Under the pieces are notes generated by a model. It did no database searches and was not told the DNA's origin. It was given only the letters and a program-made list of their open reading frames with translations. This document shows, in pieces, positions 9,157 through 39,921 of a DNA stretch of 64,000 nucleotides. This DNA is from Octopus sinensis (Eukaryota): positions 30,380,001 through 30,444,000 of the forward strand of contig NC_043020.1 of assembly GCF_006345805.1 (NCBI RefSeq), written 5' to 3'. Position 1 is the stretch's first letter, and each line of letters opens with the position of its first letter. The position numbers were made by a program, and so were the translations under genes.

Positions 9157-9191
<35 letters not shown>

Positions 9192-9310
9192 ATAGTGATA
9201 GTGATAGTGGTGGTGGTGGTGGTGATTGCAGCAGTAGTAATATGAGTAGTTTGCTAATTGGTGATTATGGAACTGTTGTCATTGTCAGTGTTGTTGTTGT
9301 TGTAGTTCGT

Positions 9311-10300
9311 GGTGGAGGCAGTGGAGGTGGTGGTGGTGGAGGCAGTGGAGGTGGTGGTGGTGGAGGCAGTGGAGGTGGTGGTGGTGGAGGCAGTGGAGGT
9401 GGTGGTGGTGGAGGCAGTGGAGGTGGTGGTGGTGGAGGCAGTGGAGGTGGTGGTGGTGGAGGCAGTGGAGGTGGTGGTGGTGGAGGCAGTGGAGGTGGTG
9501 GTGGTGGAGGCAGTGGAGGTGGTGGTGGTGGAGGCAGTGGAGGTGGTGGTGGTGGAGGCAGTGGAGGTGGTGGTGGTGGAGGCAGTGGAGGTGGTGGTGT
9601 GGAGGCGGGAGGTGTGGTTGTGGAGCAGTGGAGGTGTGGTGGTGCTGTGGAGGTGGTGTGGTGGAGGCAGTGGGGATGTGGTGGTGGTGGAGGCAGTGGA
9701 GGTGGTGGTGGTGGAGGCAGTGGTGGTGGTGGTGGTGGAGGCAGTGGAGGTGGTGGTGGTGGAGGCAGTGGAGGTGGTGGTGTGGAGCAGTGGAGGTGGT
9801 GGTGGTTGAGGCAGTGGAGGTGTGGTGGTTGAGGCAGTGGAGGTGGTGTGGTGGAGGCGTGGAGGTGGTGGTGGTTTAGGCAGTGGAGTGTTGTTTGGTG
9901 GTAGGCAGTGGAGGTGTGTGGTGGTTGTCAGTGGAGGTGGGGTGAGGGCAGGAGGTGTGTGGTGGAGGCAGTGGAGGTGGTGGGGAGGCAGTGGAGGTGG
10001 TGGTGGTGGAGGCAATGTGGAGTGGTGTGTGGAGGCAAGATCTGGTGGTGGTAGGGTGTTGAGGCAGAGTGGAGTGGTGTGGTGGAGGCAGTGGCGGTGG
10101 TGGTGTTGAGGCAGGTGGAGGTGGTGGTGGGAGCAGTTGAGTGGGGTGGTGGTGGAGGCAGTGAGGTGGTGGTGGTGGCAGGGCAGTGGTGTGGTGGAGT
10201 CAGTGGAGGTTGGTTGTTTGTGAGGCAAGGGAGGTGGTGGTGGTGGAGGCGTGGAGGTGGTGGTGGTGGAGGCATTGGAGTGGTGGTGTGGGGCAGTGGA
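9311..10300 (+). repeat. 21-bp G-rich minisatellite (GGTGGTGGTGGAGGCAGTGGA)n, perfect to about 9600 and then degenerate, within a larger GGT/AGT-rich tract from about 8240
   Basis: Periodicity visible directly in the sequence. Confidence 0.9.
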
Positions 10301-11008
10301 GGTTGTGGTACAGCTACAAACAGTAGCAGCAACATCAGCAGCAGCAGCATTAGTATGTTGTTAATCTCCATCTGTGAACCAAAAACCCATCAATGGCTGT
10401 CGCTGCCATTTCTTATTTTTACCCTTTTATTCTCGGCAACTTTCCCCATCGAATCCCTCCATTGTTAAAAAGTGCAAGCATGGCCGTGCGGTAAAAGAAG
10501 CTCGTTTGGCAACCACGTGGTCTTCGCGTTCATCATCCCACTGAGTGGTCCCCCTTGGCAGTGTCTTATCTACTAAAACCCCAGGCCATCCAAGCCTTGC
10601 CATCATGTGTGTGTTGTTGTGTGTGTGTGGTGTGTATTGTGTGTGTGTGTGCCGGCGCGCTGTGGTGTCCCCTACTGTTTGACCACTGTTGTTTGTTTGT
10701 TTACATCCCCAAAACTTAGCTGTTTGGCCAACGAGATTGATAAAGTTACCAAACTTAAAGACAAAAACAAAGACGTATTGGGGTCGGATGTGTTTTTGCC
10801 AAAAAATCCCTTTCAAGGCTCTGCCCCAGCATGGCCACACTCCATATAAAAATAAGCAACCCCATCATTAAAATCTCAAAGCTTCAAGATAACCTGATTC
10901 ATTCAAAACCATTAAGAAGCTTTAGATTTGACAGAATAATCGAATTCTAAGGGTCAAGGAAAGGGATCGCAACATAAAACTATGAAGAAAGGCATTAATC
11001 TCTCTCTC

Positions 11009-11445: not shown

Positions 11446-11545
11446 NNNNNNNNNNNNNNNNNNNNNNNNNNNNNNNNNNNNNNNNNNNNNNNNNNNNNNN
11501 NNNNNNNNNNNNNNNNNNNNNNNNNNNNNNNNNNNNNNNNNNNNN
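11446..11545. other. Assembly gap (100 N)
   Basis: Run of N; adjacency across the gap is not guaranteed. Confidence 1.
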
Positions 11546-19990: not shown

Positions 19991-21205
19991 CTAGAGTCTG
20001 CTAGAGTCAGCACTCTGGCCACCAGCAAAAAGAAACTTTATCTTGATCATAAATATAATTAATCTCAACTCATCCACCCCTACTGAATCCTGGTGGCCTA
20101 ACATTTACCGTGATATGACCCCTTTATCTCAACACCCCCACTAACTTATGTAGTCCTCTGTAGAGGGCATTTTCAGAAAAACAAACAACGATGTTTAACC
20201 CACCAGAAATTGTTTGTCTTAAGTTGGCAAAACTCCCATTTGCAACATTGCTCTCTCTCTCTCTTTCACAAGACTGACCTCACTATTCCTGTGTATGAGT
20301 ATTACAAATAAAAAAGAAGAAAAAACTGCAACTGTCTGTTGAGCCAGTGTGGCAGAGGTGGCTCATCAAATGAGCAGGATGATCTCAAGCTCAAATTCAC
20401 AGCCCCCACATGGGGCCATGGTTGGGTGGAGAGAAGATGCTGGGATCTTCGTCCTGCAGAGGGACTGAACATACGTAATCCTATCCAATCCATGTATATA
20501 TATTGTAAATGCTTTTGATGTATGGAATGAGACATCCCTTAACTGAAAAACAGGTCAAGGTGAGCAATAGGAAGGTCATCTACCTGTGAAACGGTGCTTC
20601 AATAACGTATTCATGTGTGTGTGTGTGTGTGTGTGTGTGCATGTGTGTGTACATGTATACGTATAAATGGAAAGATCTGGCGGTTCTTGTTTGAAATTCT
20701 ACCAAACAGGAAACAACAGCCTAAAGTAATGGAAAGAGCAGTTTTGTGGACATCAGGAATCCAGAGTTTGGCATTGAAGAGCCAACTGTTATTATTCTGC
20801 AGTGGTTCCACCACCACAACCACCAGTGAAAAGAAGCGAGGACTTAAAAGCATAACAAAGGTTACCTCTGAGGGAGAGGGGGAGCAATTAAGGGCTACCG
20901 TGAAGCACTTTCTTTCCAATATCTGAGACTAAACTTCTGGGAAAACAACAAATGAACCAGGCCTGAAGGGTTTTAACAGAAACCCAACAGACATTGGCAA
21001 TGATAAGAATGAAACAGAATGGTCAGCACTGGAGATGGTGCTCCAGCATGGCCTCACGTGTAGCAATGAGAACAAAAAACAAAAGAAAACTTAGGCTCAA
21101 CTTTAGGCTTTGTAAATAAGTTGGAGCTCGCTTCAAGCACAGCTATGTTTAGACACACAAGTTTTGCATACATTAAGTAGGAAATGAAGAATTCACACAC
21201 ACACA

Positions 21206-21243
<38 letters not shown>

Positions 21244-21960
21244 CATTACAACATGTTTTGGCATAGTTTTTAATTAACAAATTCACTCACAAGGCATTGG
21301 TCCACCTGAGTCCATAGTAGAAGACACTTTGCCCAAGGGCTTGCCCAGTGGGATTGAACCAGGAACAATGTGGCTGTTAAGTGAATTTCTTAACCACACA
21401 GCCATGCTTATATATCTGTATATACACACATACTCACAATTATGCATGGACACATATACATATGTATATACTATATATTGTATTTATATATATAAGACTC
21501 TGCATGTGTGTGTGGAGAGAGAGACAGAGTGTGTGTGTGTGTGTGTGTATAGATTGGTAGATAGGAAGATAGATAAGCAGATAAATATATAGACAGACAG
21601 ACAGATTAAGTATGTAGACATATGTCTTTATAAAATAAAGAAAAATAGATATATGGCTATATTTGTAATATATTGTATTCTATATATATATGAATATATA
21701 TATTTATGCGTGTATGTGTGTGTAATGTGGCGGTAGAAGTGTATTTTAGCTGAGCAATATACAAGGATACTATCAATGCGTATACAAACTCTCTCTCACA
21801 CACACACACACATTTGTATGTGTGTGTGCATGTTCATATGTATACGCCACATTAAATTTGCGCTTGAAACGTAAGTGTATGCATGTATGTTTTTATATAT
21901 ATATATATTCATTTGATTGTCTCTGTAAGTGTATAAATATATATGTATTCGTATATATAT

Positions 21961-22063: not shown

Positions 22064-23491
22064 TCAAAAGATATTTTCCGTATCCAACGCCCTCAACAAC
22101 TCTGTGCCATTAAGCAGACGATCGCCCGACCAGACTGGAGCATTCACTTCACAGTCAGTCTGCGTGAGGCGTGGGAGCCACTTGGAGGCTGCAGCCAAGT
22201 CTGTGGTGAATGTATACGGCCTCATTAAATTCTGGTGTTTAGGAATTTTGGCTCTGAATTTCAGATTGTTGTTCTGCATCGCAGAAACGTCTGCTGGTGA
22301 CATAGGAAGAGATTCAGTGGCCATGCTGTTGCTGCCATTCCTTTGCAGGGATAGTTTATCGCCATTGGAAACCAGAAGATGATCGTCATTATCATTGTAC
22401 TCAAAGTGGTCGCCTGTTTTTGCGTCACGAGGGGAGTCAGTGGCACAGCTATTGACGGAGAATGTTCTTTTAGCAACAACTTGCCAAACATTCTCCTCCT
22501 CATTGCTGTCATTAGTAGTAGTAGTAGTGTTAGTAGTAGTAGTAGTAGTGGTGGTCGGTGATGGTGGTGGTGTGCCTTCATGTGAATTTGAAACCCTATT
22601 CAGCTGTCCAGCAGGAATGAGATCAACCCCGAACAGTGTTCGGATATCAAAGGATGAACTTGATGACCTGGCATCAGGCAAGGCATTAGAAAGGCCAGTC
22701 GTGTTGTTGACTGCGCTGGTGCCCTCAGCTAAATTTGAACCCTTGGTCATCGTGTTTGACAGTGCCTGATCGTTTTGTCCTCCAGGGAGGTGATCCACAC
22801 CAAACAGTGCTCGGCAGTCATCAAAGAGAAATGATGACATACGACGAGTACTACTACTACTGCTACTATTACTACTACTACTGGTGGCAGCGACCCTGGT
22901 GGGATTCTCAACAGAATGAGATACATCAAAGCTGGGGTTCCCTTTTGCTTGGGGAAGCCTCTCACCATACAGGGCTTGGATGTCATTGGAGGAGTCTGAT
23001 TGTAGAGAATTAGGCAAGAGGCAGCCCCCGACCGTGGGGATAAGAGTGCTCTTAACTGGATTTGAAACTCTGGTGGCAGCATTCAGTTCTCTCTGATCCA
23101 GCTGACCAACTCCAACAAGGTCTTCACCAAACAGCGCTCGCTTATCGTAGGGTGGGCTCGGACTCCCTTGTACCATGGGAGAAGTAATGTTGGTTGTGGT
23201 GCCCTTCATAGAATTTGAAACTCTGATGTTGTTGTTGCTGCACGAACTGGTGGTAATGACAGAACTGGGACCAGTTAATGTAGGGGACGTGACTGTTGTG
23301 TTGAGGGCCCACCACCATGCCCAATCCTGCTCTTCAGGTTGATTGGTTGACATGGAAGAACCATTGTTGTTGCCATGGGGATTCGCTGCTGTGATGGCCG
23401 TGTTGACACTGATTGGGTTCTGGGTGGTTTGTCTTCTGCCTGTGAAAAACGAGTTGTCCAATTTGGGGAGGGATTCTGCTGGAGTTTGTGT
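22064..23491 (-). CDS. HIF1A: HIF-alpha terminal exon with C-TAD (1428 nt, 475 codons plus stop)
   Basis: Acceptor ttctctcttctttctcttctaacag|ACA CAA; ends KWLPRLTQTDCEVNAPVWSGDRLLNGTELLRALDTENIF*, containing the CEVNAP FIH asparagine-hydroxylation motif. Confidence 0.93.
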   Translation of the reverse strand, partial: TQTPAESLPKLDNSFFTGRRQTTQNPISVNTAITAANPHGNNNGSSMSTNQPEEQDWAWWWALNTTVTSPTLTGPSSVITTSSCSNNNIRVSNSMKGTTTNITSPMVQGSPSPPYDKRALFGEDLVGVGQLDQRELNAATRVSNPVKSTLIPTVGGCLLPNSLQSDSSNDIQALYGERLPQAKGNPSFDVSHSVENPTRVAATSSSSNSSSSSSTRRMSSFLFDDCRALFGVDHLPGGQNDQALSNTMTKGSNLAEGTSAVNNTTGLSNALPDARSSSSSFDIRTLFGVDLIPAGQLNRVSNSHEGTPPPSPTTTTTTTTNTTTTTNDSNEEENVWQVVAKRTFSVNSCATDSPRDAKTGDHFEYNDNDDHLLVSNGDKLSLQRNGSNSMATESLPMSPADVSAMQNNNLKFRAKIPKHQNLMRPYTFTTDLAAASKWLPRLTQTDCEVNAPVWSGDRLLNGTELLRALDTENIF

Positions 23492-24626
23492 CTGTTAGAA
23501 GAGAAAGAAGAGAGAATTACATAACAGAGATACATAAACACATATCACACAGACAGAGAGGGTGTTTGGGTTAAGTTTGACGATTATTGGTGAAGAGTCA
23601 AAGGTGTTGGAGAGCATATATATAGATGGAAGGATGGATGGATATGACAGGCTTCTTATAGTTTCCCTCTACCAAATCCACTTATAAAGTCACAAGGCTT
23701 TGGTTAGCCTGAGGTAGAAGAACTTGCCCAAGGTACCATGCAGTGGGACTGAACCCAGAACCGTGTGGTTGGAAAGCAAGCTTCATACTGCACAGCCAAG
23801 CCTGTATCTGTCTCATCTAACACCAACCGTTGGGCTGGATTCATTGTAACATGACATCAGTACGACTGAGATTGTCTCCTCAACTCAATATTGTCTCTAC
23901 TCATCCATGAAACACTTTACGGGATGCAGTCAATGCTTTTTATACTTGGTGGTACAGAGAAGAGAGAATGATTCTTCATGATCAAAAACGAAGGGGAGAT
24001 GGAGAGAGAGAGAGCCAACCCCCATCCTCATTGATATCCAGCACTGTACCCTTGTGTAACAATGTGTGTAGGTCAGCAAGTGGACCCACCCAACATCGAG
24101 ACAGTCAGGTTGTTGTTGCTGGAAAACTAATTTGCAATCAGTGTGGAATGACATTAAATGAAAATGATAGTTTCCAATGCTTGCAAGGGTCAAACGGAAT
24201 TTGGTGACCCGATGACCTTTCTGTTGTCAACCCTCACCTGTTCCTGAGCAAAGTAATACTCTCCCCCGAAGCAAGACGGGTTTTCCTGGAAGGTCAGAAA
24301 CAGACATCACCATTTGAATGTCAATGCGGCTTCTATACAACAGTTGTGCAACGTCAAGACAAAGAGACAACACCACACACACGTACACACAAGCATGCAC
24401 ATACGGACGCATTCACAAACGGACTTGCATGAAAGCATGTTAATGTGCAACGGTGTTCAATGGACGACTTACCGGCAGATAAGGTATTCCCATATGTTGG
24501 TTGACAAAGTAACCATTGTTACGGTCTTCTCCACTGACCAGAAGGTTCCGCAAAACACTGTCCTTGTTGTTGTTGTTGGATCCTGCAATTATTGTTGAAT
24601 AAAGGATTAAACAAAACACACACATT

Positions 24627-24687
<61 letters not shown>

Positions 24688-26013
24688 GTTATAATTTTAA
24701 AAAATGATGTTAAGCAAGAAACTCTTCGTCCAAAATCAGAGACATTTTCAAGAGTGTTGATCATCATCATCATCCTCATCATCGTTTAACGTCCGCTTTC
24801 CATGCTGGTATGGGTTGGACGGTTAGACTGGGGTCCGGGAAGCCAGGAAACTGCACCAGGCTCCAGTCTGATCTGGCATCTACAGCTGGATGCTCTTCCT
24901 AATGCCAACCACCCTTAGAGTGTAGTGGGTGCTTTTTATGTGCCACTGGCACAGGAGCCAATCAGACAGGCCTGGCATTGATCCCGTTTGGATGGTACAT
25001 TTTATACAGAAAGTTATTACATCAGAGTTGCTTGCAAGTGGCAGCCTTTTTCTCTGACAAAATACTTTGATATAAAGACACATACTCACCATATTCACTG
25101 ATCAGTTGTCGTGTCTGTGCTGTATTCCAACTAAATCCTTGCTGGACAGTACCACCGCCACCATCACCTCTTCCTTGAAATTGGGTGTCTTCTGGCATGA
25201 TTATCGACTCGAGTCTGCGGACTTTCCCTGGGGTTGGACCTTTAAGTTTTGTAGTGACTGGTTGGATTGGTAGCTCCTTGCCAATCTGCAGAAGAGTTTG
25301 ATTAGGGTTTGGTATCAGCACTTGGGGACTTGCTGTCTCTAGTAATTGTGAAATTTCTTTTTCTGACAGTGAAATCCCTGGGGTCCCCTCAAAAGCGGAA
25401 ATGTATTTCTGTAATTTTTCTGGTGGCAATTTAGAGGTGGGTGGTGACAAATTTGGAGCTATAGGGGGTTCCGTTAGTGACCCTTCCTTGTTGAGAGCAA
25501 ATATTTGCTGAAGCTCCTCTGCTTTTCGAGTTGGGTTGTAGTTCATATTCGACTTCATTGTCCTCAGCTGCTCTGTGAGTAACACTTGTTGCTGTAAGGG
25601 TGGTTCTGGTGAACTCCCATTGAGGACAACCTTGCTCAAGAGCCTTTCACCACCTCCTTGGAGGTTAGGGTTAGGGTTAACTAACATCGCTGGTGACGGG
25701 GATTTTTGTAGTGATGGGCTGTTGTTGAAAGGAGGTGTTTGCATAAACCCTTTGTCCAGACAGGCTTCTGTTTTGTTTGCAAGACTCAAGATGTCTTTAG
25801 AATACAGCCTGAAGAAGAAGAAGAGTGTAAGACAAGAGTAAAAATGATGACAAAACCAAGAGAATTTATTTTCACGGGGGTCTTGGACCCTTTACGTGCG
25901 AGTATGGTAGTAAAAATATCACAGTCCCATATAAGTGAGCAATGTCACAAGAGATGTGAGAAAGGTCATACAACACTTGTGTCATAGAGAGAGTCAGCAA
26001 CTGGTCTACATTG

Positions 26014-26083
<70 letters not shown>

Positions 26084-27134
26084 CCTTAGTTTCCAATGCT
26101 CCTCGTGGTCTCTGTATTTGGAGACTGAGAACCAGCTGACATTCAGAAAATGTCTCAATCATCTCAGATGACTGCTCAAGAAACATCACGTGATGCTCAT
26201 CTCACAATACCTCAATAACATATTCACCTAACCCATGCTAGCATGGAAAAACAGATGTAAAACAAATTCATACATATAACTGCATTGCATAATGTACATA
26301 TTAATAAATGAAAGTTATTAAAAGGCCATGATTAAATAAATCTATCTTCACCTCTCATAGCTTCAGACTTTATACTTTATATCCTCGTCACTGAATATTT
26401 TATCAGATTTTCTGGATTTTCAGTTACCTCGACACTCAACATTATACTTCTTTGTAATCATTTATGCAGACAGATAACCGAATCTGTAGGAGGAGCTTAC
26501 TGTGATAGCTGCAAGATTCTCTGAATCTACCTCACACACACACAGCAGTGGTTGTGTTGCTAACAACCGATGCGTGAACAACTGAACAAAACTCAAATAT
26601 CTGCTGACACTTCAAAGAAAAACCAGCTTCACCTTTCAGATTCTTTGTTCAGCTTCAGGTTAACCCTGAACAGGCAGGCCTAGGATCAAAGGTGCTCCAG
26701 TTGTGACTGTCCAGTCTAGATTGACACTTGTCCTTCTTTACTTAAGAAAGGGTGGATGAAGTTCGAAGCACATGTCTGCTATTTCTAGTGGATCAAGTGA
26801 TTCTCCAGACGCTCTCTCATTAACTTGCCCCCCCCCTCCACTGACTTTTACTAATCACAAATGGAAATAACAATTAGAAAGAGAGAAAGAAAGAGATGTG
26901 AAAATAAAACCAGAGTTAAGAGAAGATTCCTCCCCACACAAAGACTTACATATCTCCAATGTCTGGGCTCAGCAACAAACTCCCTTCATTTGGTGAGGAC
27001 AGGGTGGCCTGAAGAATGTCGTATTCCGTCTCTTCTATGCTGAAATCCTTTTGTTATCATCAAGTATTTGAAAGAAATAGGAATAGTAAAGAATTTAAAT
27101 GTTGTATATATACATTATGTAGCGGCGCCGCCGC

Positions 27135-27168
<34 letters not shown>

Positions 27169-27558
27169 ATCATCATCATCATCATATATATATATATAAA
27201 TAAAGTTTTAAAAAAGCAGATAAACAAAAGGAATGACATAACAGTCTTATCTTTACAGCTGTTTCGGATGAACCATGACTAGGGTCATAGCCACGTATAT
27301 TATGTAATAAAGTTCATAATTTCATGGTGTCGACCTGTTCACTGACAAAATTCCGTGCTGCACGGAATTTTGTCAGTGAACAAGTCGCGGTTTCAAAACG
27401 ATGAAAATAATTTGACAAATTAAATTTAAATGTTGAAGTGAATCGAACGGTTTTTGTGTGTTTCTTAAATGGCTTATAAACACCTTTCACGCTGCAATTG
27501 TTTTCGTTCCAGCACACGATCTCAGATCAAATTACTTGCTATGCAAGTACATCTCCGT

Positions 27559-27593
<35 letters not shown>

Positions 27594-28208
27594 CATATAA
27601 ACCTATGTAATTTGCACACCTGTGTAATTTACGCAGGTGATTTTCAGGATAAAAATTGTTAAAAAAAGCTTTTACTCATGTAAAATTTGTACCCAAAAGT
27701 TTTCAGAATTGCTGATAAAGCCAGGGGAAAAATGTTTTCAATTTCGTTGTATTTAGCATAATTTCACTTACTTATGATTAGATTTTATTAAATTTTCATT
27801 AAATAAAAATAATTTCTGTTTAACAGGTTTCACATTAAAAGTTACTGAATTAGAAAGTGTTTTGTGTTGCCTTCCATATTAAATAAAGTCTGCTTCGCTC
27901 CTTTGGTATAGCCTCCCCCTCCCTCAATGATGTCAGTCCGCTTTACTCACTCGCCATACCCTCCCCTTCCCTCAACGTCAGCGTTCCAATAAGAATGAGT
28001 AAACAAGAAATCTGACGCTGCTCGGTGTCTGTGTGTGTATGAGACTGTGTGTGTGTGTACATGTAAGTGTATGAGACTGTGTGTTTAAGTGTGTGTGTGT
28101 GTGTAAGTGTATGAGACTGTGTGTGTGTGTGTGTCTCCACATAACCGTGAGATTAACAGGAAATAACCGAAGTATTATTATACAAATTGTAAGCAGACAA
28201 TGGCTGTA

Positions 28209-28273
<65 letters not shown>

Positions 28274-31200
28274 GTATATATATATATGTCTATCATGTGT
28301 GTGTGTGTATATATTTCTATATACACATGTATACATGTATATGTATATATGTCTATCATGTGTGTGTGTGTGTGCTTCCCTTTCTCTCTCACAATCAGTC
28401 ACAGAGACATGCATACACAGGAAAAGTTGTTCAGGATTATCAACAAAAAACGAAGCTGATAAATACACACAGGTGTTGCTAATTAAATTTAATTACCAAT
28501 AAACAACACCTTCGATGACACTTTACTCAATCGAGTAAAGGCAGGACTGCAATCAGAAAACCACTACTTTTAAAAACAAATGTCACAAAGCATTTAGAGT
28601 AAAAACCTACAGAATTGGTCCCTCGAGCAGTGGAAGAATGTTATTTTCTTGGACGAATCATCCTTTACCTTATTTCCAACCACCTGCCTTCTTCCAACTG
28701 TTAAACATGGAGAAGGATCTGTGATGATCTGGTGTGTGTGGGGGGGGGCTATATCTTGGAAATCCGCTGGCCCAATGGTTTCCCTTCAAGGCAGAATTAA
28801 TAGTCAAGACTATTTAAGCATTTTATCTGATCAAATGCATCTTATGGTTGCTGAACTGTTTCCGGAGGGGAATGCAATCTTTCAGGATGATAGTGCACCA
28901 ATTCACACAGCTAAAATTGTTACTGAATGGCACAAGGAACATTCTAGTGAAGTTGAACATCTACTCTGGCCAGCACAGTCCCCAGATCTCAATATTATTT
29001 GAACATTTATGGTGCATTTTAGAAAAACAAGTAAGGAGATGATATCCTCCACCATCTTCGCTACAAGAACTGGAGACTGTTTTAGCTGAAGAATGGACAA
29101 GAATTCCTTTGGAAACAATTCAAACTTTGTACGACTTCATACTTTGTAGAATTCAAGCTGTAATTACTGCCAAAGGCGGTTCTACCCTATATTAAAATAA
29201 ATTTGTTTGAAATTTTAAGGTATATGAAAATATAAGCATACATAAATGGGCCAAAACCCAACCGTTTGGCTCAGAATTTCAATCTACAAATGAAATATAT
29301 ACATACTTGTAACTGAGGAGACAAATCTGGAACTGGTAAACACTTTGGTTTGTTATCACATATCTCTGTCATACTGACTTCGTTCATATATGCCTCGTCA
29401 GCATCAAGTGTTGGGACCTTGAATGCTGTTTCTGTGGAACGGAAAGAAAAGGCAGATGAGAGATAGGAAAATTGTGATGGAGAAGCAATGAGTGTGTGTG
29501 TGTGTGTGTGTGCAATAGATATAACCCCACCACCAGGTCAACCAAAGCCTCATGAATTAATATGATAGATAGAAACTGAAAGGAGCTCATTGTGTGTGTG
29601 TGTGTTTTTACATTTGCAGTTTATGAAAATCCCCAGCTTCAAGAAGTGTTCTTCCATTTCTGACACCAAATTGTCTGCTCACTCTTCACACTTTCAGAAA
29701 TGTGGAAATAAGAGACCCTTCCCCCCTCTGCTTACATACATACATATACAGATATATATATAAATATGTACTTACCAAAACTGGAAGGTACTGACAGATC
29801 TATACACACATCACCTGCGCTTGGTGCCCGAAATGTCAAATCGTCAAATGCATTCATACCTGGAATATATACAGTGAGTTAGACGAAAAGTGTTGGTGGC
29901 TGTAGATATCATCATCATCATCATCATATTTATTTCGCTTAGGCATAGTGAGACTAACAGCCTGGTGTTAGAACGTTACAACTCAATATACATAGGCTCC
30001 AGAATAAAGCATTAGTCAGGTGCAGAGAGGGTAAAATGAAATAAAACGACTGGCAAAAGAATAAGGAATTATGTAATGAATGGCATTGGCTTACAGCTGT
30101 TTCTGCTGTGAGATGCAGTGAACTCAGAGCAGAGTGCACTGCATAATTTCTTGTTCCCTTGTCATTTATTTAATCAGGTGTATGAGTATGGGTGTGTAAA
30201 TCCAATGAAGAAAATAAAGAACAACACAGGAGAAGCAAGGTTTAAAGGAAAGAGAAAATTGCTTAACGTTTTGGATGTTGACCCTTCATCAGAAGTTAGA
30301 GAGGAGCAGGGGGGGGTGAGAAAGAGAAATATCAAATTGAGAAAGAAAAGAAGATAAGGAAGCCACAGGGGAAAAATGACTGACACACACACATATACAC
30401 ACTGTCTGATCAATAAGTATCCAGACTGTTGCCATAGTAACGAAGTTAAAGCTCGCAGAGTGGAGCCACTTGGCATAGATTGACCTTCAACTCTGCAGTG
30501 CATGCGCACTAAGCTTTAACTTTCAGACTCACTTCCGCTGTTTACAGCAGTGCTTGGAAGGAAGGTGTGTAGTGTGTGATCGTTACATTGACCATCACAG
30601 AGAAAACTGAGCAGAGAATCTCTTGTGCAACTGGAACTTGGGAGTCTTTTCGGTCAGCTGAAAGCAGTTTTGGCACAAACTTGGCGGACACATGTCTCAT
30701 AACCAAATCTTCAGTGATAATGGACTGCACTGAACCGTAACTAATCTGCACATCCTCTCATAACTCATGGATGGTGATTCCATGATTTCCCCTCACATCT
30801 GCAATGTTTTTCTCAGTGATTGTAGAGCAACGTGAAATGATTTTGCTCAAGAATACAAGACACCACATGGCCTGGGAATTGAAACCACCACTCCCCTCAT
30901 CGTGAGACTAACATCCTAACCACCAGGCCAGGCACCCTTATACTATAATAATAACAATAAATGATACTCACAGTCAGCTGTCGATGAAGTGTCCCCTTGT
31001 TCCTCAAGGAGCAGCGTTGTGGTTGGAGAAACCAAGTCATCAATCAACATATTGGTAACATTGGTGCTGCCGGGTCCACCACTGCCATCAGAACCCGTGA
31101 CTGCAGGGTCATGAGGAGAAGTGGTGTTGTTACCATTGTTGTTCGCTTCACTGAGGAGCGATGTTGGTATTGTTGCTATGTTTGTGCTATTTTTGTTGAT

Positions 31201-34200
31201 GTAGAGGTTTTCATCCATGTCCTTTGTCCGGGGTGCAAAGATCTTCTCCGTGTTCAGCAGAGGACCAGGACTGCTGTAGTGGTTACACTGGCTCTGCCCT
31301 GGCTGGCAGCTCTGGCCGAGGTTATTGAGTCTTCTGTTGTCACAGGTCTCATTGCTAGCAATACCAACCGATTGCGGAGAACGATGCTGCGACTCCTCAG
31401 TCGATGCCACGACGACAGTGTCACAAACATCACCATCATCATCGCGAATAAGAGCAGGTGGGGCAGCAGTGAAGTCAGGAGATGCTAATGCGTACCCGAG
31501 TGAATGAGGGCTGAACACTTGGCTCTCTTGAGATGCTGTCTTCATAAACTCAACTGTCTTTGTTGTCATTCGCTTTTTCTTCTTGGAGATTCCTGGCAAC
31601 AGTGCTGACCCGCTCATCCTTGTCGGATCATTGTCCTTCAGATCATCTTTCATCATCTTCTTTATCTTCCTCTCTCTATTAGACTCTGCCTTTTGCTTGG
31701 AGGCTGACATTTCCAATATCGTCATTTCACTGTCTTCCTCATAGTTGCCATTTACTTGATTTCTATAATCTCTGATGCCAATGTCAAACCTCTTATCTCT
31801 ATCATCCACCTTCATTTCAATTGTATTCTCGTCCTCTTCATTCTCTTCTACTCTGCCATCAATCATCTTTACAGGAACTGTTCTCTCTCCGTTTTCGGAA
31901 ACCTCTATACTGCTGTAATTTGTTCCAGTATCAAAATCATTGGCCATTATGACCTCTGCCATCACAACTTCATTGCTATACCCCCTCTCCATCCTCCGGC
32001 TCTCGTCCATTTCTCTTTCACCTGGCTCTTTCACTTGACTATCATCAATAATGCAATCATCATCTGTCTCATCGACATCCATTTCGGCTCCGATGCCATT
32101 GTCAAAGACATTCACCACAACACCGTCTTCATGTTTCGCTCCTCTTTTCCTCCACTTCAACTTGCTGCTGTCTTCTTCATCCTTGTATTCATCAGAGACA
32201 GCACCATCTTTACAGCTTATGATGCCATTTTCTTCCTTCACCAATGCCTTCTCACCTCTGTAACCACTGCTCTCCATATTACTGTTGTTGTGACTCCCTC
32301 TCTCCTCCTCTTCATTGTTTGTTGCCTTTCTCTTGAACTTTTTTGTGTTTCTTTGCTCCGCTTGTTGCTCTCTGTCTTCCTTCTTACCACCAAAACCATG
32401 TCCAATGCTGTGTTTGTCCTTGTGGCTATAAAACCTGCTGTCACATGACTTTGGACATGCCTCACGCTGACTGACCAGGTCACCAAGCTTGGAGAGGACA
32501 AACTTGTGAGAAGAGGACGAGCTTGATGAAAGGGTTGGAGTCAATTTAGATATTTTGCAGGTTAACGATGACAAGGGTCTACCGTCCTTGCCCCTCTTGG
32601 TATCGTCATGACCACCACCATTGAGGTTATCCACATTTTCTTTCTTACACTTCACCAACAACTGGCTTTCAGCTTCTGAAGTTGCGACCTTTGGAGCAAC
32701 AAGAAGAGAGTACGACTGAGTACGATCCATGGATATTTTCTTTGTTGCAGAAGTCGATGATAATGATGTGACACTGTGGTCCTTTGTATGTTTGCTGTTG
32801 TTTGTGTGGAGGAAATCTTCCATTTGTGGATGTGAAGAAGACTGTTTTGCTGATGGGGTTTGTGGCTGGGGTTGAGGAGACAATGGCTGCTGTACTAGGG
32901 AGAGGATCTCATGCTGGTTTTCAATCTCACTGAAAAAGAGAAACCGAAAGAAAAAGAAATTCAACAATTACAGTTTGATGAAGAAAACAGCAAAATGTGA
33001 AAATATTTTCAAAATTCCATAAAAAAATATAAAAAAGACTAAGAAAGATGAGAAGAAAGACAAAAAAAAACAGAATGGGGAATGAAGAAAACAGAGAGAA
33101 AAAAGTGAAAGAGAGATGAAGAGATTTGAAGAAAGTCAGTGAAAAAGAAAGAAAAGAGAAGCAGAGGAAAAGGAAACAAGAAAGTGACAGACAGACAGAC
33201 ACAAGTGGAGACATAAGGAGAGAAGAAGGAAAAGGGGACAAGAGAAGGTAACTGAAACGGAGAAATACCATACCTAAGGACACTGTGGACGCAGACAACA
33301 TAGAGTGGTTTCTGTGTCCGGTTGTCATAAATGACAGTTGCTTGAGTGGTCAGCCAGACATGACCACCCTGCTTGGCCAGAAATCTGTATTGTCCAGTGG
33401 TGATCTGTCCTTTTGTCATTACTGAAATGGAAACAAAATACTGAATGTATAGATACACATATACCCCCACCCTGTAATGTGTACCCCCAGCATTACATCT
33501 TCACATCTACCTCTCACTTCTCTCTCTCCAACCATTTTAACTCCTCTACTGCAAGACACCTCTTCACGCAATACACATAAGATACATGGCTACATTGTTG
33601 TTATCATCAATGTTAAAGATATGCTGTGTGATTGGTCATTCTGGAATTTGCTGGAAAATTATATGGAGACAAAATGGATGAGTTCCTTTGGAGCGTTGGG
33701 CCTCACAGAGGCAAAGTGGGTGAGTTCCTTTTGAGCGTTGGGCCTCACAGAGGCAAAGTGGGTGAGTTCCTTTAGAGCGTTGGGTCTCACAGAGGCAAAG
33801 TGGGTGAGTTCCTCTCGAGCGTTGGGCCTCACAGAGGCAAAGTGGGTGAGTTCCTTTTGAGCGTTGGGCAATGACCAAGACCTTTGGCATTATGTCGTGC
33901 TTGAGAAGAACCATTAAACCAAGAAAAATTGCAGTTGTATTAGATACTGGTCTCATGCAAATTGGCACCCATGCCACATAAACACACTCCGGTGTCACGC
34001 AAAACCACCCATTACACTCTCAGAGTGGTTGGCGTTAGGAAGGGCATCCAGCTATAGAAAACCATGCCAAATCGGACTGGAGTCTGGTGCAGCCTTCCAG
34101 CGTGCCAGCCCAGTCAAACCATCCAACCCATGCCAGAATGGACAAAGAACATTAAATGATGATGATGATGATGATTATATATATATATATATATATATAA

Positions 34201-37200
34201 AACAACAATAAAATCAAACTAGTGCATTTAATACATGTGTTTCAGATCATTATGCAAGAGAAAAAAAACAGAATTCATCTCTTACGTAACATCTTCAGTC
34301 AAAACATTTCAAAATATATTTCATTATATTCTATACAACTCCAAGCTAACCAGTCCTTACACCATCGACACAGATCAAGGATTTCTTGCAGTTTATTGAA
34401 CTGGATCTGAGTTGAAAAATTCTGGTAAAGTGCATCACTTCTAAGCATAATACAATATATACACCCTCATATACACACACATTATACTCACTGAAATCAT
34501 CTAAACTGGTACTTACACTCCTTAAACGCTTGGCCAACCATCTCAGCATCCAATCCATGATAATATTCATATATGGAATGTCCAATGATGTCTTCAGAAG
34601 AATAGCCAACCAATTCTTTGATTCTGTGAGCACAAAGAGAGAGAAAGAGAAGATATAGTGTACATACACACACACATATACGTATATATATATTGTTAAT
34701 GTTTGTTTTTATATTTAGTTATAATAAAAAGCAATTTTACTTTAATATGATGGGTTATTCTAGACTTTCGTAGAGGACAAATTTATTATTCTTAAAAATG
34801 AGAATGTTGTTGTTAGTAACTGCGAAGTTTTGGCCAGTTAAGCCATCATCAGACTTCAAAGTCACTGTCAATAATATTCCCGTTTAATAATAAATAAATA
34901 AATACACACACACACATATATAAATGCACACACACACACACACGTATGCATATAGTAATTAGTTATACTGATTTTCTGCCACAAATTCCTTTTGGAAAAG
35001 TGGATCTCGAAGCACATAAAGCTATTATTAATAGCATGTAAATACTGGGCTTAAAAAACCCTTTGAATGGAAGAAATCAAAGGCTAGTAAACAGAGGCAG
35101 GCTTCGACTTTTTGTAGCAACAGGGTTTTTAGCCCAAATATTTCCATGTTATTATTTATAGCCTTATGTGTTTCAAGATCTACTGTTCCAAAGAAGAATA
35201 ATTTCACATTCTTTCAGAAGTTTAAAAATTCTTATGATCTCAACATAGGTACAGGTATGTAAGAAGTTTGCTTCCCAACCACATGGTTCTGGGTTCAGTC
35301 CCATTGCATGGCACCAGTCTTCTACTATAACCTAGGGTCAACCAAAGCCTTGTGAGTGGATTTGGTAAACGGAAACTGAAAGAAGCCCATCATATATATT
35401 ATTTGTGTGTGTGTGTGTGTTTGTCCCTCACCACTGCTTGACAACCAGTGTTGGTATGTTTACATCCCTGTAATTAAGCGGTTTGGCAAAAGAGACCAAT
35501 AGAATAAGTACAAGGCTTTTAAAAAAAAATGAGTAACAAGGTTGATTTGTTTAATTAAACATCTATGAGGCAGTGCTCCAACATGGCCGTAGTCTAACAA
35601 ATGAAACAAGTAAAAATGAAAAGCTATATAAATATATAAAAATATATACTCACTTTTCATCCCATATAGTGAACCTCATATCCATGCTGTGTTGGCTGAG
35701 GAAAGTCTGGGAACCAAGTGGTACCTCAATATTAGAAGGATGAGGAATCGGTTCACCGAAAGCCACAAAGTAAGCAGCACCTGGCCTTGGCTTTCCGCTC
35801 TCGGCACTGCTGTTATCAGAGCTGTTGCCACTGACGTGCCTGCTACGGTTTGCAGGTGTGGCACACGGGGACAATGTTTTAGCAGTGTCATCACTGGAGT
35901 CACCCGATTTAGCCTCGTCATCATTATCCTGTTTCTGCTTCAGGTTGTCACGGAAACGACACACATGATGACTTCCAGTATCCCCACCCTCGCCATCTGC
36001 ATGTTCAGCCATCTTATTACTATCATCATCATTTTTATTATTATTATTATTCTCATTAGTTGGAGGATGTTGATGAAGCGGAAGCTTAAGGAGATGCGAA
36101 AGACTGTCGCCTGCAGCCTGGGCTTCACCTGTAAAGCTTCCATTCTCTGCTTCTTCTTTGATTGTTACAGGTGACGTTGCTAATGACGATGACTGTTGAT
36201 GATGTAATGAAGATGAGGTGTGGTGAAGGTGTTGGTGGGGGCTGTGTTTGTTTGGATGATGTACATGATGAAGGGAACTTCCTCTTCCTCCTCTGCTGCT
36301 GTCACCTTTGTCAGCAACGAGTTTCTCCGCCTTTATCTCCTGTCCACTGTACTCCTCGTCATCATTTGCTTCGGACTTAAATTCCTTCTTCTCGATGACA
36401 ACAACATCATCATCATCATCATCCTCACCATCACTATCATTGTCAGCATCAGTGCTGGCTGCTACATGCTTCGCTAGTTTCTTCTGGAGAGAGGCTTTGT
36501 CTAAAGGTGAAGAGGATGAACATGGTAAACACAAAGTGGATGATGATGTAGAGGAGGAGGATGATGATGCAGGAGACGTAGCTGATGAGGATTGGAAGAT
36601 GTTGGTATCTCCAGTAGGGCACAAAAGTTGACCACTGAACTTGATGACCTGCAAAAACAAGCAACAAAAATGAGAGAACAATAACATGTAGGTACAAAAG
36701 CATCCATACAGAAGTATGGATGCTTATGTCCAGACTCTCACAGATATTGCAGAGATAATTTGCAACAATTAAAGATAATTCAATTTACAAAAGGGTTAGA
36801 ATTAATTCTTATACTCAGGACAGAGAGAGGTTACTAAAGTTGCATGAAATTGCATGCCAAACGTAGTTAGAAACAAAGCATGATTTTTAGCGCATCTTCT
36901 GGTGCAATTGCATGAAATTTATTTGGCTTTTCAGTATCACAAGTACTGTATAAATATCACAGACAGACAGACAGACATTTGTTGAATGAATAACTTTTAA
37001 CAATTAATGATGATTCTCTTCACAGAAGGGTTAAATGTGATCTTTATGCCGCTCTTGGGACACAGAGTTTCATGTGGTTGCATTGTCGGATGTGCTCAGG
37101 AAGAGAATGAATTTTGGCTGCATCAACATTCATCAGAGACAAGACTAATCAACACACAACGGCCTAAGCAGCCTTTAATCAAGACCACTTAAGTATGGCC

Positions 37201-38479
37201 CTTGACTGTCCTGTGTCCTGTACAAATAAGATTTTCCTGTTAACTGCAATAAATTGCTTTTAATTCTACAATACACAAAATATTTTAACAATATTTTAAT
37301 ATAATTCCTAATAATATTTAATGACAAAAATATAATAGGATCTTTTAAACATCAAATGGTTGTGAGAGACCACCGAAGTAAAATAGAAATCTGAGAGGTC
37401 CAGAGGGAAGAAATGGTTGAGAACCACTGGTTTAGAATAAAGTCACCCTGCCCCCTCATACACACACCCAGAGTTCATAATAGTCTTGCAAAAGCTGAAT
37501 GGCAACCTCCTCACGAGGGCTGGTGGTGTGCAAAAAGAAAAAAAAGCACCCACCAGGCAGACACTGGAGTGCTTGACAAATAATCTGGACAAATCCCTTA
37601 CCATGAAACTCTAAACCTTTGAGTATCTCCTGTAGTATTACTCTTCATTAATCAGGTGATGACACCAACACCACCACTGCTGCTACCACCACCAACGCCA
37701 CCACCACCACCACCACCACCACCACCACCACCACCACTTTAACAGTTTTTAGTGATGTACATTCTGTTGCAAACATCTGGGATAGGTTCCTCATCTGAGA
37801 ATAACTCCCTCCAACAGCCCTAGAAAGGCCCTTACAGCTTTGACTAAGCCATAAAAAAAACCCTTCCAATATGCAGTGCTGCAGAGTGGGGGAGGGATTG
37901 GTGTAAGGAAGAGGAGTAGTGACACACACACACACACACACAATGACAGCAGCAAAAACTACAAAGGGACCCTACCTTATACAAAGGGACCCTACCTTAT
38001 ACAAAGGGACCCTACCTTATATGATGCAGATTTCAGGTTGATGTTGCGCCCCTTTGCTGTCAATGTAGACTTCACACGAAGTGAGAACACTTGCCGCGGG
38101 GAAGGCCAAGTGTCAACTCCAGCTGTACGATGGGCCCGGGATGGACCCAGCTCACTTCGTAGTTGTTCGTGGTCACATGGGTGAATGTACTCGTAGATAT
38201 TTTGTCCAAGAAGGTCAATCTGTGAAGCATAAAGGTCAGATTTAGAAAGTCATTGAGATATATCGAGAGAGAACTAGATACTGTATACACACCCACACAC
38301 ATAAGCGTAGTTGTCACGAACTCTCATAAAACGTGGAATCGTATTACATTGAAAGCAAACTTCTGAACCACACAGCTATGTATACATTCAAATATATAGG
38401 TATACGTACTATATATATATCTATCTATATATATATATATATATAGGTATATATATATATATATTATATATATATATAT

Positions 38480-38560
<81 letters not shown>

Positions 38561-39921
38561 AAAAGAGAGAGAGAGAGAGAGAAGCCCTGAATGTCAGCCA
38601 TTAACTCAACCAGATTATCATTGGTGTGTTTCTAAAGAGCAAGGAAATGAGGAAGTGGGGGGCGTGTGAAAGCGCTCACCTGCTGGATACCTAAGTATTT
38701 GCCAACATGCTCGGACACATCAACAATTTCCCCATCACGTGACAGGATAATGACAAACCCATCCAGGGCCCTCGCATACAGCTGGGCCACAACAGCCTCG
38801 TCCAGGCTGTCATCATCCACGCTGCTGCTGCTCGGACTGTGATTTTCTGTTCTGGTTGGCTGATCATTGTCTTCAGCTGTTCTTGGGCTGTTCTTTGGTG
38901 AAAATGACCGACTCTCGCTGATGGCCTCTGCCTCAGTCTGGTCATCATTGGTGATGCTTCGGTTGTTATCAAAGTTGAAGTTCTCTGCTTGGTCAGTCTG
39001 CCGTGTGTCTTGCACTAAACAACCAAAAGGGACAAAAAAGATTAAGTAGAATTAAAACAGATTTCATATGTTGGATATTATCCAAAATAATCTTAAAAAT
39101 AATTAATAATCAAAGTCTTAAAGTGGTGTGAAAGTGTTGCTGTCTTGTAGCAGACGCTCTATAGCTGGGTGCCTTTCCTGTTGCCCACCCTCACCTCTTT
39201 CCAAGCAGGGTAATATTTTCCCAAGGCCAGAAATGCTTTTCACAGAACACTTGAAACAAACATCTCTTTTATGATGATGATGTGCATTTACAACCATCAC
39301 ATGATGTCAAGACAAGGGAACACACACACACACACACACACATGATGGGCTTCTTTCAGTTTCCATCTATCAATCTCCTCACAACGTTTTGGTCGACCTG
39401 AGGCACTACAGAAAACTACTTGCTCAAGGTGTCATGGTGTCAATTTGAGAAACTGCTGCAGTGTTCTTAGCTAATTAAGAATAGCTAATTAAGAATAGCT
39501 AATTAAAACTAGCTTACTTTATGCCTTTGTTTATAGCATCACCACTTGACATTTTTAGAGAGTTATGTTCTGTTGCAAACATTGGTGCCAAGTCTCTGGT
39601 CTGAGGGTGACTTCCATTCTGCCTCTTAAATGCCATCAAATACTGTATCCCTCTTTTTTTCCCCCCCACCCCACATACACACAATGATGATGAACCCTAA
39701 TACAAACACAAAAACACAAAACAAACTTATTACCGCTCAGTCGTATTTCGTGTTGCTTCATTAAGCACAGTGTCAGCCTCATGATGGACGCCTTGTCCAG
39801 CTGACGTGTCTTCCCTTTGGCCAAAGGAAGTGTGTCGGCAAGCTCTGTGAATATGTGGGTCTCCTGGTTACGCCGTTGTCGAGCTGCATCACGGGACTTT
39901 TCTCTCCGTTTCTCTGAATTC
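22064..39921 (-). CDS. HIF1A: Hypoxia-inducible factor alpha (bHLH-PAS-ODD-CTAD), 13 coding exons reconstructed; first coding exon not securely identified
   Basis: Exon translations give the HIF-type bHLH (NSEKRREKSRDAARQRR...LDKASIMRL), PAS-A (ALDGFVIILSRDG; YIHPCDH; KGRNINLKSASYK), PAS-B ([48 protein letters not shown]), NODD-like LTFRAPSAGD and C-TAD LPRLTQTDCEVNAP...LLRALD. All introns are GT-AG with matching phases. The symbol denotes the HIF-alpha family; orthology versus paralogy is not established. Confidence 0.95.
24473..24582 (-). CDS. HIF1A: HIF-alpha exon with SVLRNLLVSGED motif (110 nt, phase 1 to 0)
   Basis: Acceptor ttgcag|GA TCC; SNNNNKDSVLRNLLVSGEDRNNGYFVNQHMGIPYLP; donor CCG|gtaagt. 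Needed to bridge phase 1 to the phase-0 terminal exon. Confidence 0.8.
25090..25808 (-). CDS. HIF1A: HIF-alpha exon, Pro/Gln/Ser-rich (719 nt, phase 2 to 1)
   Basis: Acceptor cttcttcttcag|G CTG; 239 open codons (ORF 25022-25789); donor G|gtgagt. Confidence 0.85.
26950..27047 (-). CDS. HIF1A: HIF-alpha exon at the expected C-terminal ODD position (98 nt, phase 0 to 2)
   Basis: DFSIEETEYDILQATLSSPNEGSLLLSPDIGD; donor AT|gtaagt joins in frame to G CTG TAT of the next exon. The acceptor (aacaaaag|) is weak, and a competing tttcag 8 nt downstream would shift the frame. Confidence 0.7.
28520..29222 (+). mobile_element. Tc1-family transposase fragment (catalytic domain), intronic
   Basis: WKNVIF-DESSF, TVKHGEGSVMIW, FQDDSAPIHTA, WPAQSPDLNII-EHLW and TAKGGSTLY motifs, with frameshifts. 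Confidence 0.9.
29307..29431 (-). CDS. HIF1A: HIF-alpha exon (125 nt, phase 1 to 0)
   Basis: Strong acceptor ttttctttccgttccacag. The only open frame is the phase-matching one (TAFKVPTLDADEAYMNEVSMTEICDNKPKCLPVPDLSPQLQ); donor CAA|gtatgt. Confidence 0.8.
29776..29859 (-). CDS. HIF1A: HIF-alpha exon: N-terminal ODD-like motif (84 nt, phase 1 to 1)
   Basis: Acceptor attccag|GT ATG; MNAFDDLTFRAPSAGDVCIDLSVPSSF resembles the human Pro402 motif LTLLAPAAGDTIISL; donor G|gtaagt. Confidence 0.9.
30620..30830 (-). mobile_element. Mariner transposase fragment, intronic
   Basis: VQISYGSVQSIITEDLVMRHVSAKFVPKLL matches the mariner HTH region and the WVP-equivalent motif. Confidence 0.75.
30972..32929 (-). 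CDS. HIF1A: HIF-alpha exon: very long post-PAS exon (1958 nt, phase 2 to 1)
   Basis: Acceptor tttttcag|T GAG ATT GAA; starts EIENQHEILSLVQQ (typical post-PAC HIF sequence); 652 open codons including KIFAPRTKDMD; donor T|gtgagt. Confidence 0.88.
33274..33421 (-). CDS. HIF1A: HIF-alpha exon: PAS-B/PAC (148 nt, phase 1 to 2)
   Basis: Acceptor catttcag|TA [54 protein letters not shown]; donor AG|gtatgg. Confidence 0.96.
33677..33868 (+). repeat. 42-bp tandem repeat, about 4.5 copies
   Basis: GAGCGTTGGG recurs at 33691, 33733, 33775, 33817 and 33859. Confidence 0.92.
33680..34170 (+). mobile_element. Abundant LINE-3'-end-derived interspersed repeat with (GAT)n tail; related copies near 3617-3915(-), 24778-24990(-), 40330-40460(+), 43975-44320(-), 48228-48460(-) and 57590-57830(+)
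   Basis: Shared blocks such as GGAAGGGCATCCAGCT(G/A)TAGAAA and CCAACCCATGCCAG...TTAAA(T/C)GATGATGATG recur at these loci. The 5' part translates like a LINE ORF2 C-terminus (LGLTEA...LWHYVVLEK). Confidence 0.75.
34517..34623 (-). CDS. HIF1A: HIF-alpha exon: PAS-B (107 nt, phase 2 to 1)
   Basis: Acceptor ctcacag|A ATC AAA; IKELVGYSSEDIIGHSIYEYYHGLDAEMVGQAFKE; donor T|gtaagt. Confidence 0.95.
35654..36648 (-). CDS. HIF1A: HIF-alpha exon: end of PAS-A, long acidic/His/Ser-rich insertion, start of PAS-B (995 nt, phase 0 to 2)
   Basis: Acceptor ttgcag|GTC ATC AAG; VIKFSGQL...[39 protein letters not shown]; donor AA|gtgagt. Confidence 0.93.
37961..38020. repeat. 20-bp perfect tandem repeat x3 spanning an exon-intron junction
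   Basis: (ACAAAGGGACCCTACCTTAT)3. Confidence 0.95.
38016..38219 (-). CDS. HIF1A: HIF-alpha exon: PAS-A (204 nt, phase 0 to 0)
   Basis: Acceptor ttcacag|ATT GAC; encodes IDLLGQNIYEYIHPCDHEQLRSEL...FSLRVKSTLTAKGRNINLKSASYK; donor AAG|gtaggg. Absent from the supplied ORF track in this frame. Confidence 0.95.
38680..39014 (-). CDS. HIF1A: HIF-alpha exon: linker and start of PAS-A (335 nt, phase 1 to 0)
   Basis: Acceptor gtttag|TG CAA GAC; ends ...LYARALDGFVIILSRDGEIVDVSEHVGKYLGIQQ; donor CAG|gtgagc. Overlaps ORF 38632-39015. Confidence 0.94.
39734..39921 (-). CDS. HIF1A: HIF-alpha exon: bHLH domain (188 nt, phase 2 to 1)
   Basis: Acceptor ttgacag|G AAT TCA GAG AAA CGG; encodes NSEKRREKSRDAARQRRNQETHIFTELADTLPLAKGKTRQLDKASIMRLTLCLMKQHEIRLS; donor G|gtaata. 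Confidence 0.96.

Follow-up and report, generated by a model that had tools for sequence, protein, structure and literature searches.

Does an octopus HIF-alpha do without the C-terminal of the two oxygen-dependent degrons and, if so, which residues could still place it under the control of oxygen? The question is raised by a 64,000-nucleotide (nt) stretch of the Octopus sinensis genome (NC_043020.1, forward-strand positions 30,380,001 to 30,444,000; here called the window and numbered from its first letter), which carries a complete gene for the hypoxia-inducible factor HIF-alpha on the minus strand (60493 to 22064, about 2,174 amino acids, aa). A reading of this stretch made from its letters only, hereafter the sequence-only reading, had claimed that no LxxLAPYIP- or RAPYIP-like motif occurs in the exons of this gene, so that the C-terminal oxygen-dependent degradation domain (CODD) would be lost, and that the Pro402-equivalent site of the N-terminal domain (NODD) and the CEVNAP motif are kept.

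The CODD is missing from the octopus HIF-alpha gene

Its domains, its phylogeny and the positions and phases of its introns identify the gene as the octopus orthologue of HIF-alpha. The gene model was built from tblastn with a related protein as guide and from direct reading of the splice sites, and its junctions rely on consensus sites, on phases and on the RefSeq model of the sister species O. bimaculoides. The encoded protein carries a HIF-type bHLH (Pfam PF23171, 64.9 bits against a cut-off of 27) followed by PAS-A, PAS-B and PAC (PF00989, 69.1 bits; PF08447, 82.0 bits; PF14598, 64.8 bits), the Pfam names at its N-terminal third being bHLH_HIF1A, PAS, PAS_3 and PAS_11. It also carries the C-terminal transactivation domain (CTAD) with the asparagine targeted by FIH (DCEVNAP; PF08778 HIF-1a_CTAD, 47.1 bits against a cut-off of 25). 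Moreover, the intron phases (2,1,0,0,2,1,2,1,1,0,2,1,0; n=13) equal those of the Patella and Solemya genes, bar one missing intron. Note that exons are numbered here in the 15-exon molluscan scheme, in which a single exon of 98 nt replaces exons 11 and 12 in octopus.

In support of the earlier claim, regular expressions, a profile search and Pfam were all negative across the 64 kb. Neither the CODD motif [RKL]AP[YF]IP nor LAPY, RAPY, APYIP or the relaxed AP[YFWHM][IVLM] with HIF context matched in the six frames of the window. A hidden Markov model (HMM) trained on the CODD region in about 100 homologues, and run with filters off on stop-free stretches of at least 8 residues, gave no match in the window; its top score was the NODD exon itself (E 0.057). 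The curated CODD model of Pfam, PF11413, found nothing at E<=10 in the window protein, and its positive controls scored 31.7 bits (abalone) and 27.0 bits (oyster). The two introns in which a CODD exon might have been missed, 27048-29306 and 25809-26949, hold none by regular expression or HMM. The sole run of N in the window (11446-11545, 100 N) lies outside and downstream of the gene, and there is no assembly gap within the HIF-alpha gene. We conclude that the CODD is missing from the gene itself, and is not just skipped in one isoform.

This absence is meaningful and no chance effect, because [RKL]AP[YF]I[PST] is present in 107 of the 120 best HIF-alpha homologues. The 13 without a match are mostly truncated models or isoforms, and P0050 carries the variant KAPYINM. 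Since the C-terminal degron (PF11413) that belongs to a canonical two-degron HIF-alpha is absent from the octopus protein, the latter is not of the canonical two-degron type, to which HIF-1alpha, HIF-2alpha and most bilaterian HIF-alphas belong.

A single 98-nt exon stands in the slot of the CODD exon

The HIF-alpha genomic loci of Patella caerulea and Solemya velum were fetched and their exons mapped exactly. Both genes have 15 exons, with start phases 0,2,1,0,0,2,1,2,1,1,0,0,2,1,0. Exon 9 is the NODD exon (87-99 nt), exon 10 bears FKEEP, exon 11 bears SPxDY...MDKFFSxMD (phase 0 to 0), exon 12 is a dedicated CODD exon (113-119 nt, phase 0 to 2) that ends in ...LSPDFNP, and exon 13 begins with (G)LFGRTESVF. 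The octopus gene matches all of these phases, with the exception of the single exon that stands between exon 10 (29307-29431, minus strand like all exons of the gene; ETAFKVPTLDADEAYMNEV...SPQLQ, phase 1 to 0) and exon 13 (25090-25808; (M)LYSKDILSL..., with start phase 2 like the molluscan (G)LFGRTESVF exon). This single exon, at 26950-27047, has 98 nt and runs from phase 0 to phase 2 in the slot of exons 11 and 12. It encodes DFSIEETEYDILQATLSSPNEGSLLLSPDIGD, which has no alanine-proline pair, as the sequence-only reading had said, and it cannot extend to hold the lost motif because in-frame stops lie directly upstream of its acceptor.

The same reading had put this exon at the position expected for the CODD. 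Exon order and intron phase (0 to 2) bear this out, but sequence similarity does not single out exon 11, exon 12 or a fusion of the two as its source (shuffle p>=0.08). The exon is 94% identical to that of O. bimaculoides. Against exons 11 and 12 of four molluscs and of P0001, a transcript-derived relative described below, it scored no better than shuffles (p 0.08-0.78), and its placement differed between two MAFFT runs. The phases, together with the junction LSPDIGD/M-LY as compared to LSPDFNP/G-LF (slashes mark exon junctions), suggest that at least its 3' end comes from exon 12. The whole may be exon 12 or exon 11 in truncated form, or a deletion-fusion of both, and RAPYIPM is gone in each case. 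An HMM for exon 11 found no relic of that exon in the introns. The intron between exon 10 and the 98-nt exon (27048-29306) consists in part of microsatellites and a Tc1/mariner DDE fragment, the one between the 98-nt exon and exon 13 (25809-26949) is gap-free, and neither has CODD coding potential. Finally, TLDADEAYMNEV of exon 10 was considered as a decayed CODD and rejected, as order and phase put it before the CODD slot.

The absence of the CODD is shared with relatives

Two word-indexed homologue searches returned no octopus proteins, only genomic open reading frame (ORF) fragments of other octopods, and a third gave a single match, P0211. An exhaustive HMMER search with P0001 as query (1.84 billion representatives) recovered the 2,318-residue O. 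bimaculoides protein XP_014772617.1 (P0126), which is collinear with all exons and 87% identical, with the identical junctions SSF/ETAFK, PQLQ/DFSIEE and DIGD-M-LYSK. Its public name is only 'uncharacterized protein LOC106870896'. The O. bimaculoides locus (L006) has no CODD in six frames. Note that the intron downstream of the 98-nt exon is unbroken in the window and interrupted by two N-gaps in L006; beside one of these gaps stands an element missing from the window, which is AT-rich, has terminal inverted repeats and shows no coding potential. The gaps lie at 20996-21338 and 22320-22496 of L006 and the small AT-rich element at 21339-21570. Phylogenetic footprinting against O. bimaculoides yielded no information on the introns, since they are as conserved as the exons.

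Two further relatives have the usual size. P0001 (756 aa) comes from transcript contigs of three sequencing runs (L001-L003) and P0261 (834 aa) is also transcript-derived; both have an uninterrupted coding sequence, carry LT[N/H]RAPSAGDVCISL and the CTAD, and have no CODD. They retain DEWELKNVFPDYKIEP/FCKNEMIF, which corresponds to the 3' half of exon 12 followed by the opening of exon 13, so the CODD was not lost through exon skipping. In a neighbour-joining tree (567 columns) the two octopus proteins, P0001 and P0261 formed one clade inside the molluscs in 300/300 bootstraps, P0001 and P0261 being sister to the octopus proteins. The CODD loss noticed by the sequence-only reading in one gene thus recurs, with the same architecture, in the O. 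bimaculoides gene model and in the transcripts of two relatives, and this shared absence places the loss before their common ancestor. The simplest reading of these sequences would be that the motif was lost once, before the lineages split, and that octopods later lost about 40 residues more by deletion.

One transcript isoform of P0001, P0123, is without the nine residues FCKNEMIFS. Their absence falls precisely on the inferred exon 12/13 junction, which suggests an intron at the ancestral position and an alternative acceptor 27 nt downstream. MIQKDVF in P0001 was considered as a relic of MLQRAPF and rejected, since P0261 does not conserve it.

The NODD-type proline and the CTAD asparagine are kept

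The sequence-only reading was right that the Pro402-equivalent site is retained, and was silent on the arginine at position -2. Exon 9 (29776-29859; CMNAFDDLTFRAPSAGDVCIDLSVPSSF) contains LTFRAPSAGDVCIDL at 29795-29839 on the minus strand, with the proline codon of the candidate hydroxy-acceptor, Pro1333, at 29822-29824. The octopus counterpart of the canonical N-terminal degron, LxxLAPxAGD, reads LTFRAPSAGD: it retains AGD and both residues of the Ala-Pro pair, with Arg in place of Leu at -2. Both the phase (1 to 1) and the size of exon 9 are those of the Patella and Solemya NODD exon. The CEVNAP sequence is also intact, at 22136-22153 on the minus strand within the CTAD, and its FIH-target asparagine is Asn2149 (codon 22142-22144).

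How strongly are these sites conserved? Past the PAC domain, in the C-terminal ~1,500 residues, the four cephalopod-lineage proteins are alignable in five islands only: a post-PAC block, TEKIFAPRTKDM (63% invariant), the NODD-type block (15/23 positions, 65%), SVLRNLLVSGEDRNNGY (54%) and the CTAD (76%). Outside these islands at most 36% of positions are invariant, and most of the sequence is unalignable. The NODD-type motif reads LT[F/N/H]RAPSAGDVCI across the cephalopod-lineage sequences, and its standing as one of the five conserved islands argues for a functional site. Moreover, exon 9 is 100% identical between the two octopus species, compared to 76% for exon 8 and 65% for exon 13, which points to purifying selection on the motif. 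Strong conservation thus covers the NODD-type motif and the CTAD with Asn2149, and it covers the bHLH-PAS core as well.

The arginine at -2 of the retained site is probably compatible with the enzyme, because protostome CODDs as a rule have Arg or Lys at this position (MRAPYIPM, MKAPYIPM), as do the NODDs of Pomacea and Bradybaena.

The NODD-type DLTHLAPTAGDVCVPL was found in most of the 120 best homologues, in protostome, echinoderm and amphioxus HIF-alphas, so the motif is far more widespread than a vertebrate-centred view suggests.

A proposed single-proline oxygen switch and its alternatives

Our preferred reading, which we consider fairly probable, is that octopus HIF-alpha, having no CODD and keeping the NODD-type proline and the CTAD asparagine, is under single-proline control if it has retained degradation in oxygen. 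PHD/EGLN would hydroxylate the single NODD-type proline, Pro1333, and VHL would read the hydroxyproline and direct the protein to degradation in oxygen, while FIH would hydroxylate Asn2149 and so still gate transactivation by the CTAD. The sequence-only reading had likewise proposed that degradation may depend on one proline, which would make HIF more stable or tune it differently and leave FIH control intact; the proposal is based on vertebrate enzymology (PMC5007464, PMC6235002). In vertebrates the CODD is the preferred PHD substrate (PMC5007464), and the NODD is a weaker one whose hydroxylation fails at milder hypoxia (PMC5007464, PMC6235002). By analogy, a NODD-only HIF-alpha may stabilise at higher oxygen tensions, in milder hypoxia, than a two-site protein, unless the cephalopod enzyme has co-adapted. 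The Trichoplax enzyme too prefers the CODD, which is regarded as the more ancient of the two sites (PMC6235002). A bolder proposal, which we make tentatively and would rate somewhat short of an even chance, is that cephalopods moved the HIF oxygen switch to a single NODD-type proline bearing the Arg-Ala-Pro signature of the protostome CODD. If this were true, cephalopods would be the only animal group in our survey to have discarded the ancestral, preferred CODD and made the 'secondary' site the sole sensor. It would also imply that EGLN/VHL specificity has co-adapted and that the oxygen set-point has shifted, in animals whose aerobic demand is very high.

Some points weigh against single-proline control. 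The LxxLAP region matters more for the binding of the NODD than of the CODD to human PHD2 (PMC5007464), and the retained octopus site is LTFRAP, not LxxLAP. The word-indexed searches gave no transcript of the window's own species, and P0001 and P0261 are assigned to the cephalopod lineage by phylogeny only.

The main rival, which we regard as unlikely, holds that prolyl control was lost entirely and that the NODD-like block is kept for another reason, for instance a binding partner; regulation would then run via FIH and the CTAD, via transcription or via other degrons in the large insertions. We know of no invertebrate in which hydroxylation of a NODD-type site has been shown, which counts for such a loss, as does the fact that the preferred site is gone and the remaining one has no Leu at -2. 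In addition, both the Trichoplax enzyme TaPHD and human PHD2 prefer the CODD, and the residues that PHDs have conserved in evolution are the CODD-selective ones (PMC6235002, PMC5007464). However, RAPSAGDVCI does not vary among sequences that are very divergent and cannot otherwise be aligned in this region, its AP-x-AGD core is the same as that hydroxylated in vertebrates, and the arginine at -2 is, as said, a standard protostome CODD residue. Moreover, an EGLN1-like gene is expressed in one squid, Euprymna, from which its transcript has been reported (PMC5385879).

The other explanations concern what might replace or hide the CODD. That a non-canonical proline took over its role in octopods, such as that of LLVAPKV in the exon 8 insertion (residue 747), we consider very improbable: although PHD substrate recognition tolerates much variation around Ala-Pro, and SYSLLVAPKVATSE is kept in O. 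bimaculoides as well as in P0122, an ORF of a more distant octopod, LLVAPKV stands in an octopod-specific insertion that P0001 and P0261 do not have, resembles neither degron beyond Ala-Pro and gives no score with the CODD HMM, and for PPIAPNLSPP in exon 13, the other candidate, O. bimaculoides has IAS. Could a second HIF-alpha paralogue elsewhere in the genome carry a normal CODD, the giant copy being a diverged duplicate? HIF-alpha genes do come in pairs in some gastropods (Nucella, P0018 and P0112; Babylonia, P0027 and P0034), one of the Nucella copies has no CODD, and the word-indexed searches, which miss octopus proteins that exist, are silent on a paralogue. We nevertheless hold this to be extremely improbable, since the gene keeps every ancestral intron phase and the other conserved blocks, as an orthologue should; that the exhaustive HMMER search gave only the octopus giant, P0001 and P0261 clusters as identifiable members of the lineage argues weakly in the same direction. 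Least probable of all is a CODD that is present but was missed, in an unannotated or alternative exon of either intron or through assembly collapse. Such an exon would be easily overlooked, being small in molluscs (113-119 nt); the O. bimaculoides assembly has its two N-gaps in the corresponding intron, and Octopus introns are 85-100% identical, so that conservation cannot flag hidden exons. Against this, the gene is gap-free in the window and no motif was found in the 64 kb by regular expression, HMM or Pfam; the O. bimaculoides-only sequence beside the gap is the noncoding inverted-repeat element described above; skipping an exon of 113-119 nt would break the reading frame; and P0001 and P0261, which are uninterrupted, keep the flanks of the expected site and still have no motif.

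Exon map and expansions of the gene

The coding part of exon 1 (60468-60493; MDKKAKPR plus 2 nt, donor GTACGT) has 26 nt, as in Solemya, and matches the MDKKTKPR N-terminus in O. bimaculoides. Exon 2 (39734-39921; RNSEKRREKSRDAARQRR...) encodes the bHLH (Pfam bHLH_HIF1A), PAS-A begins in exon 3 (38680-39014) and continues in exon 4 (38016-38219), and exon 5 (35654-36648), the PAS-A/PAS-B linker, has grown by low-complexity expansion to 995 nt, compared to 206-215 nt in Patella and Solemya. PAS-B is encoded by exon 6 (34517-34623) and PAS-B/PAC by exon 7 (33274-33421). Exon 8 (30972-32929) has 1,958 nt, compared to 164-170 nt in other molluscs, and its 3' end is the conserved TEKIFAPRTKDM block. 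At the end of the same exon, upstream of the NODD, a NTEKIFAPRTKDM block with an Ala-Pro pair (about 31180-31275, minus strand) is found from chitons to octopus. Exon 14 (24473-24582) bears the SVLRNLLVSGEDRNNGY block, and the 3' end of the expanded exon 15 (22064-23491, 1,428 nt) encodes the CTAD.

With about 2,174 aa here and 2,318 aa in O. bimaculoides, octopus HIF-alpha has about three times the usual length, which is 700-830 aa in other molluscs and in P0001 and P0261. Low-complexity expansions within exons 5, 8, 13 and 15 account for the difference, with no added exons. The last exon holds four spaced copies of D-x-[RQ]-[AT]-L-[FY]-G-[EV]-[DR]...G-x-Q (23120-23137, 22958-22975, 22793-22810 and 22622-22639, minus strand), which are kept in O. 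bimaculoides. They resemble the DFNPGLFGRTESVF block that opens exon 13 of other molluscs and is degenerate at its original place in octopus, and could be a multiplied short linear motif.

Repeats and transposon remains

The Tc1/mariner-type transposase fragment in the intron 27048-29306 lies at about 28600-28990 on the plus strand (Pfam DDE_3, 33 bits) and has internal stops. The segment 28540-28957 is missing from the corresponding intron of O. bimaculoides, and is thus a lineage-specific insertion; 27125-27944 is also unaligned to O. bimaculoides and has a perfect hairpin near 27340-27380. Intron 1 contains pogo/Tigger-like transposase ORFs with broken frames (50702-51827, minus strand; Pfam DDE_1, 65 bits, and a weak CENP-B_N), as well as a 77-bp minisatellite (56421-57618; 15.6 copies, 98% identity) with a higher-order period of 459 bp. 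Downstream of the gene, a strongly strand-skewed low-complexity tract (8000-10400; GC skew 0.69 over 8-10 kb) translates into long Pro/Thr/His-like repeats.

Significance

Nearly all full-length HIF-alphas in the sample have the CODD, over a range that extends from sea urchin to insects and vertebrates. The contribution of each proline to oxygen sensing is still debated in vertebrates, and a lineage with the NODD-type site only is a natural experiment on the share of each. Cephalopods are active and haemocyanin-dependent, and some live in oxygen-minimum zones, so that an altered HIF set-point would be physiologically relevant to them. The sequence result is solid across the clade; its physiological meaning is conjecture. 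Cephalopod HIF-alpha will be overlooked or misjudged in surveys whose domain models centre on the CODD (PF11413). Moreover, because the protein is labelled 'uncharacterized', annotation-based HIF surveys would score octopus as having no HIF-alpha.

Comparison with known HIF-alphas

Full-text literature searches found no published description of cephalopod HIF degrons. Octopus genomes are among those named as surveyed in the supplement of PMC9618697, and the passages of it that we consulted give no per-species result. The closest known system is the HIF-alpha of other molluscs (Magallana gigas, Haliotis rufescens, Patella caerulea, Solemya velum), which shares with octopus the 15-exon scheme with identical intron phases, bar the one missing intron, the bHLH-PAS-PAC core, the TDKIFAPKTKDM block, the NODD-type exon, the SVLLNLLLTGEDRNHGY block and the CTAD. 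These proteins have 700-800 aa and carry DxxMRAPYIPM on their dedicated exon 12, whereas octopus has no CODD, one 98-nt exon for exons 11 and 12, a NODD with Arg for Leu at -2, and about 1,400 further residues spread over exons 5, 8, 13 and 15. O. bimaculoides XP_014772617.1 is the orthologue, with the same junctions and the same missing CODD, and differs in length (2,318 compared to about 2,174 aa).

Some insect proteins also have the NODD and the CTAD and no CODD (Leptinotarsa isoform X3, P0070; Ischnura isoform X2, P0023). However, their names mark them as isoforms, so the gene may still carry a CODD, whereas in octopus the locus itself has none. The vertebrate HIF-1alpha and HIF-2alpha have a NODD core that can be aligned with that of octopus (DALTLLAPAAGDTIISL against DDLTFRAPSAGDVCIDL), and DCEVNAP...LLQGEELLRALD of the CTAD is common to them and octopus. 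Both vertebrate proteins have two degrons (Pro402 and Pro564 in human HIF-1alpha), of which the CODD is the preferred PHD substrate (PMC5007464), while octopus has no CODD. Finally, vertebrate HIF-3alpha, whose site reads LAPYISM (P0115), and Trichoplax HIF-alpha have a single site too, but theirs is of the CODD type (PMC6235002); the single site of octopus is of the NODD type, the reverse arrangement.

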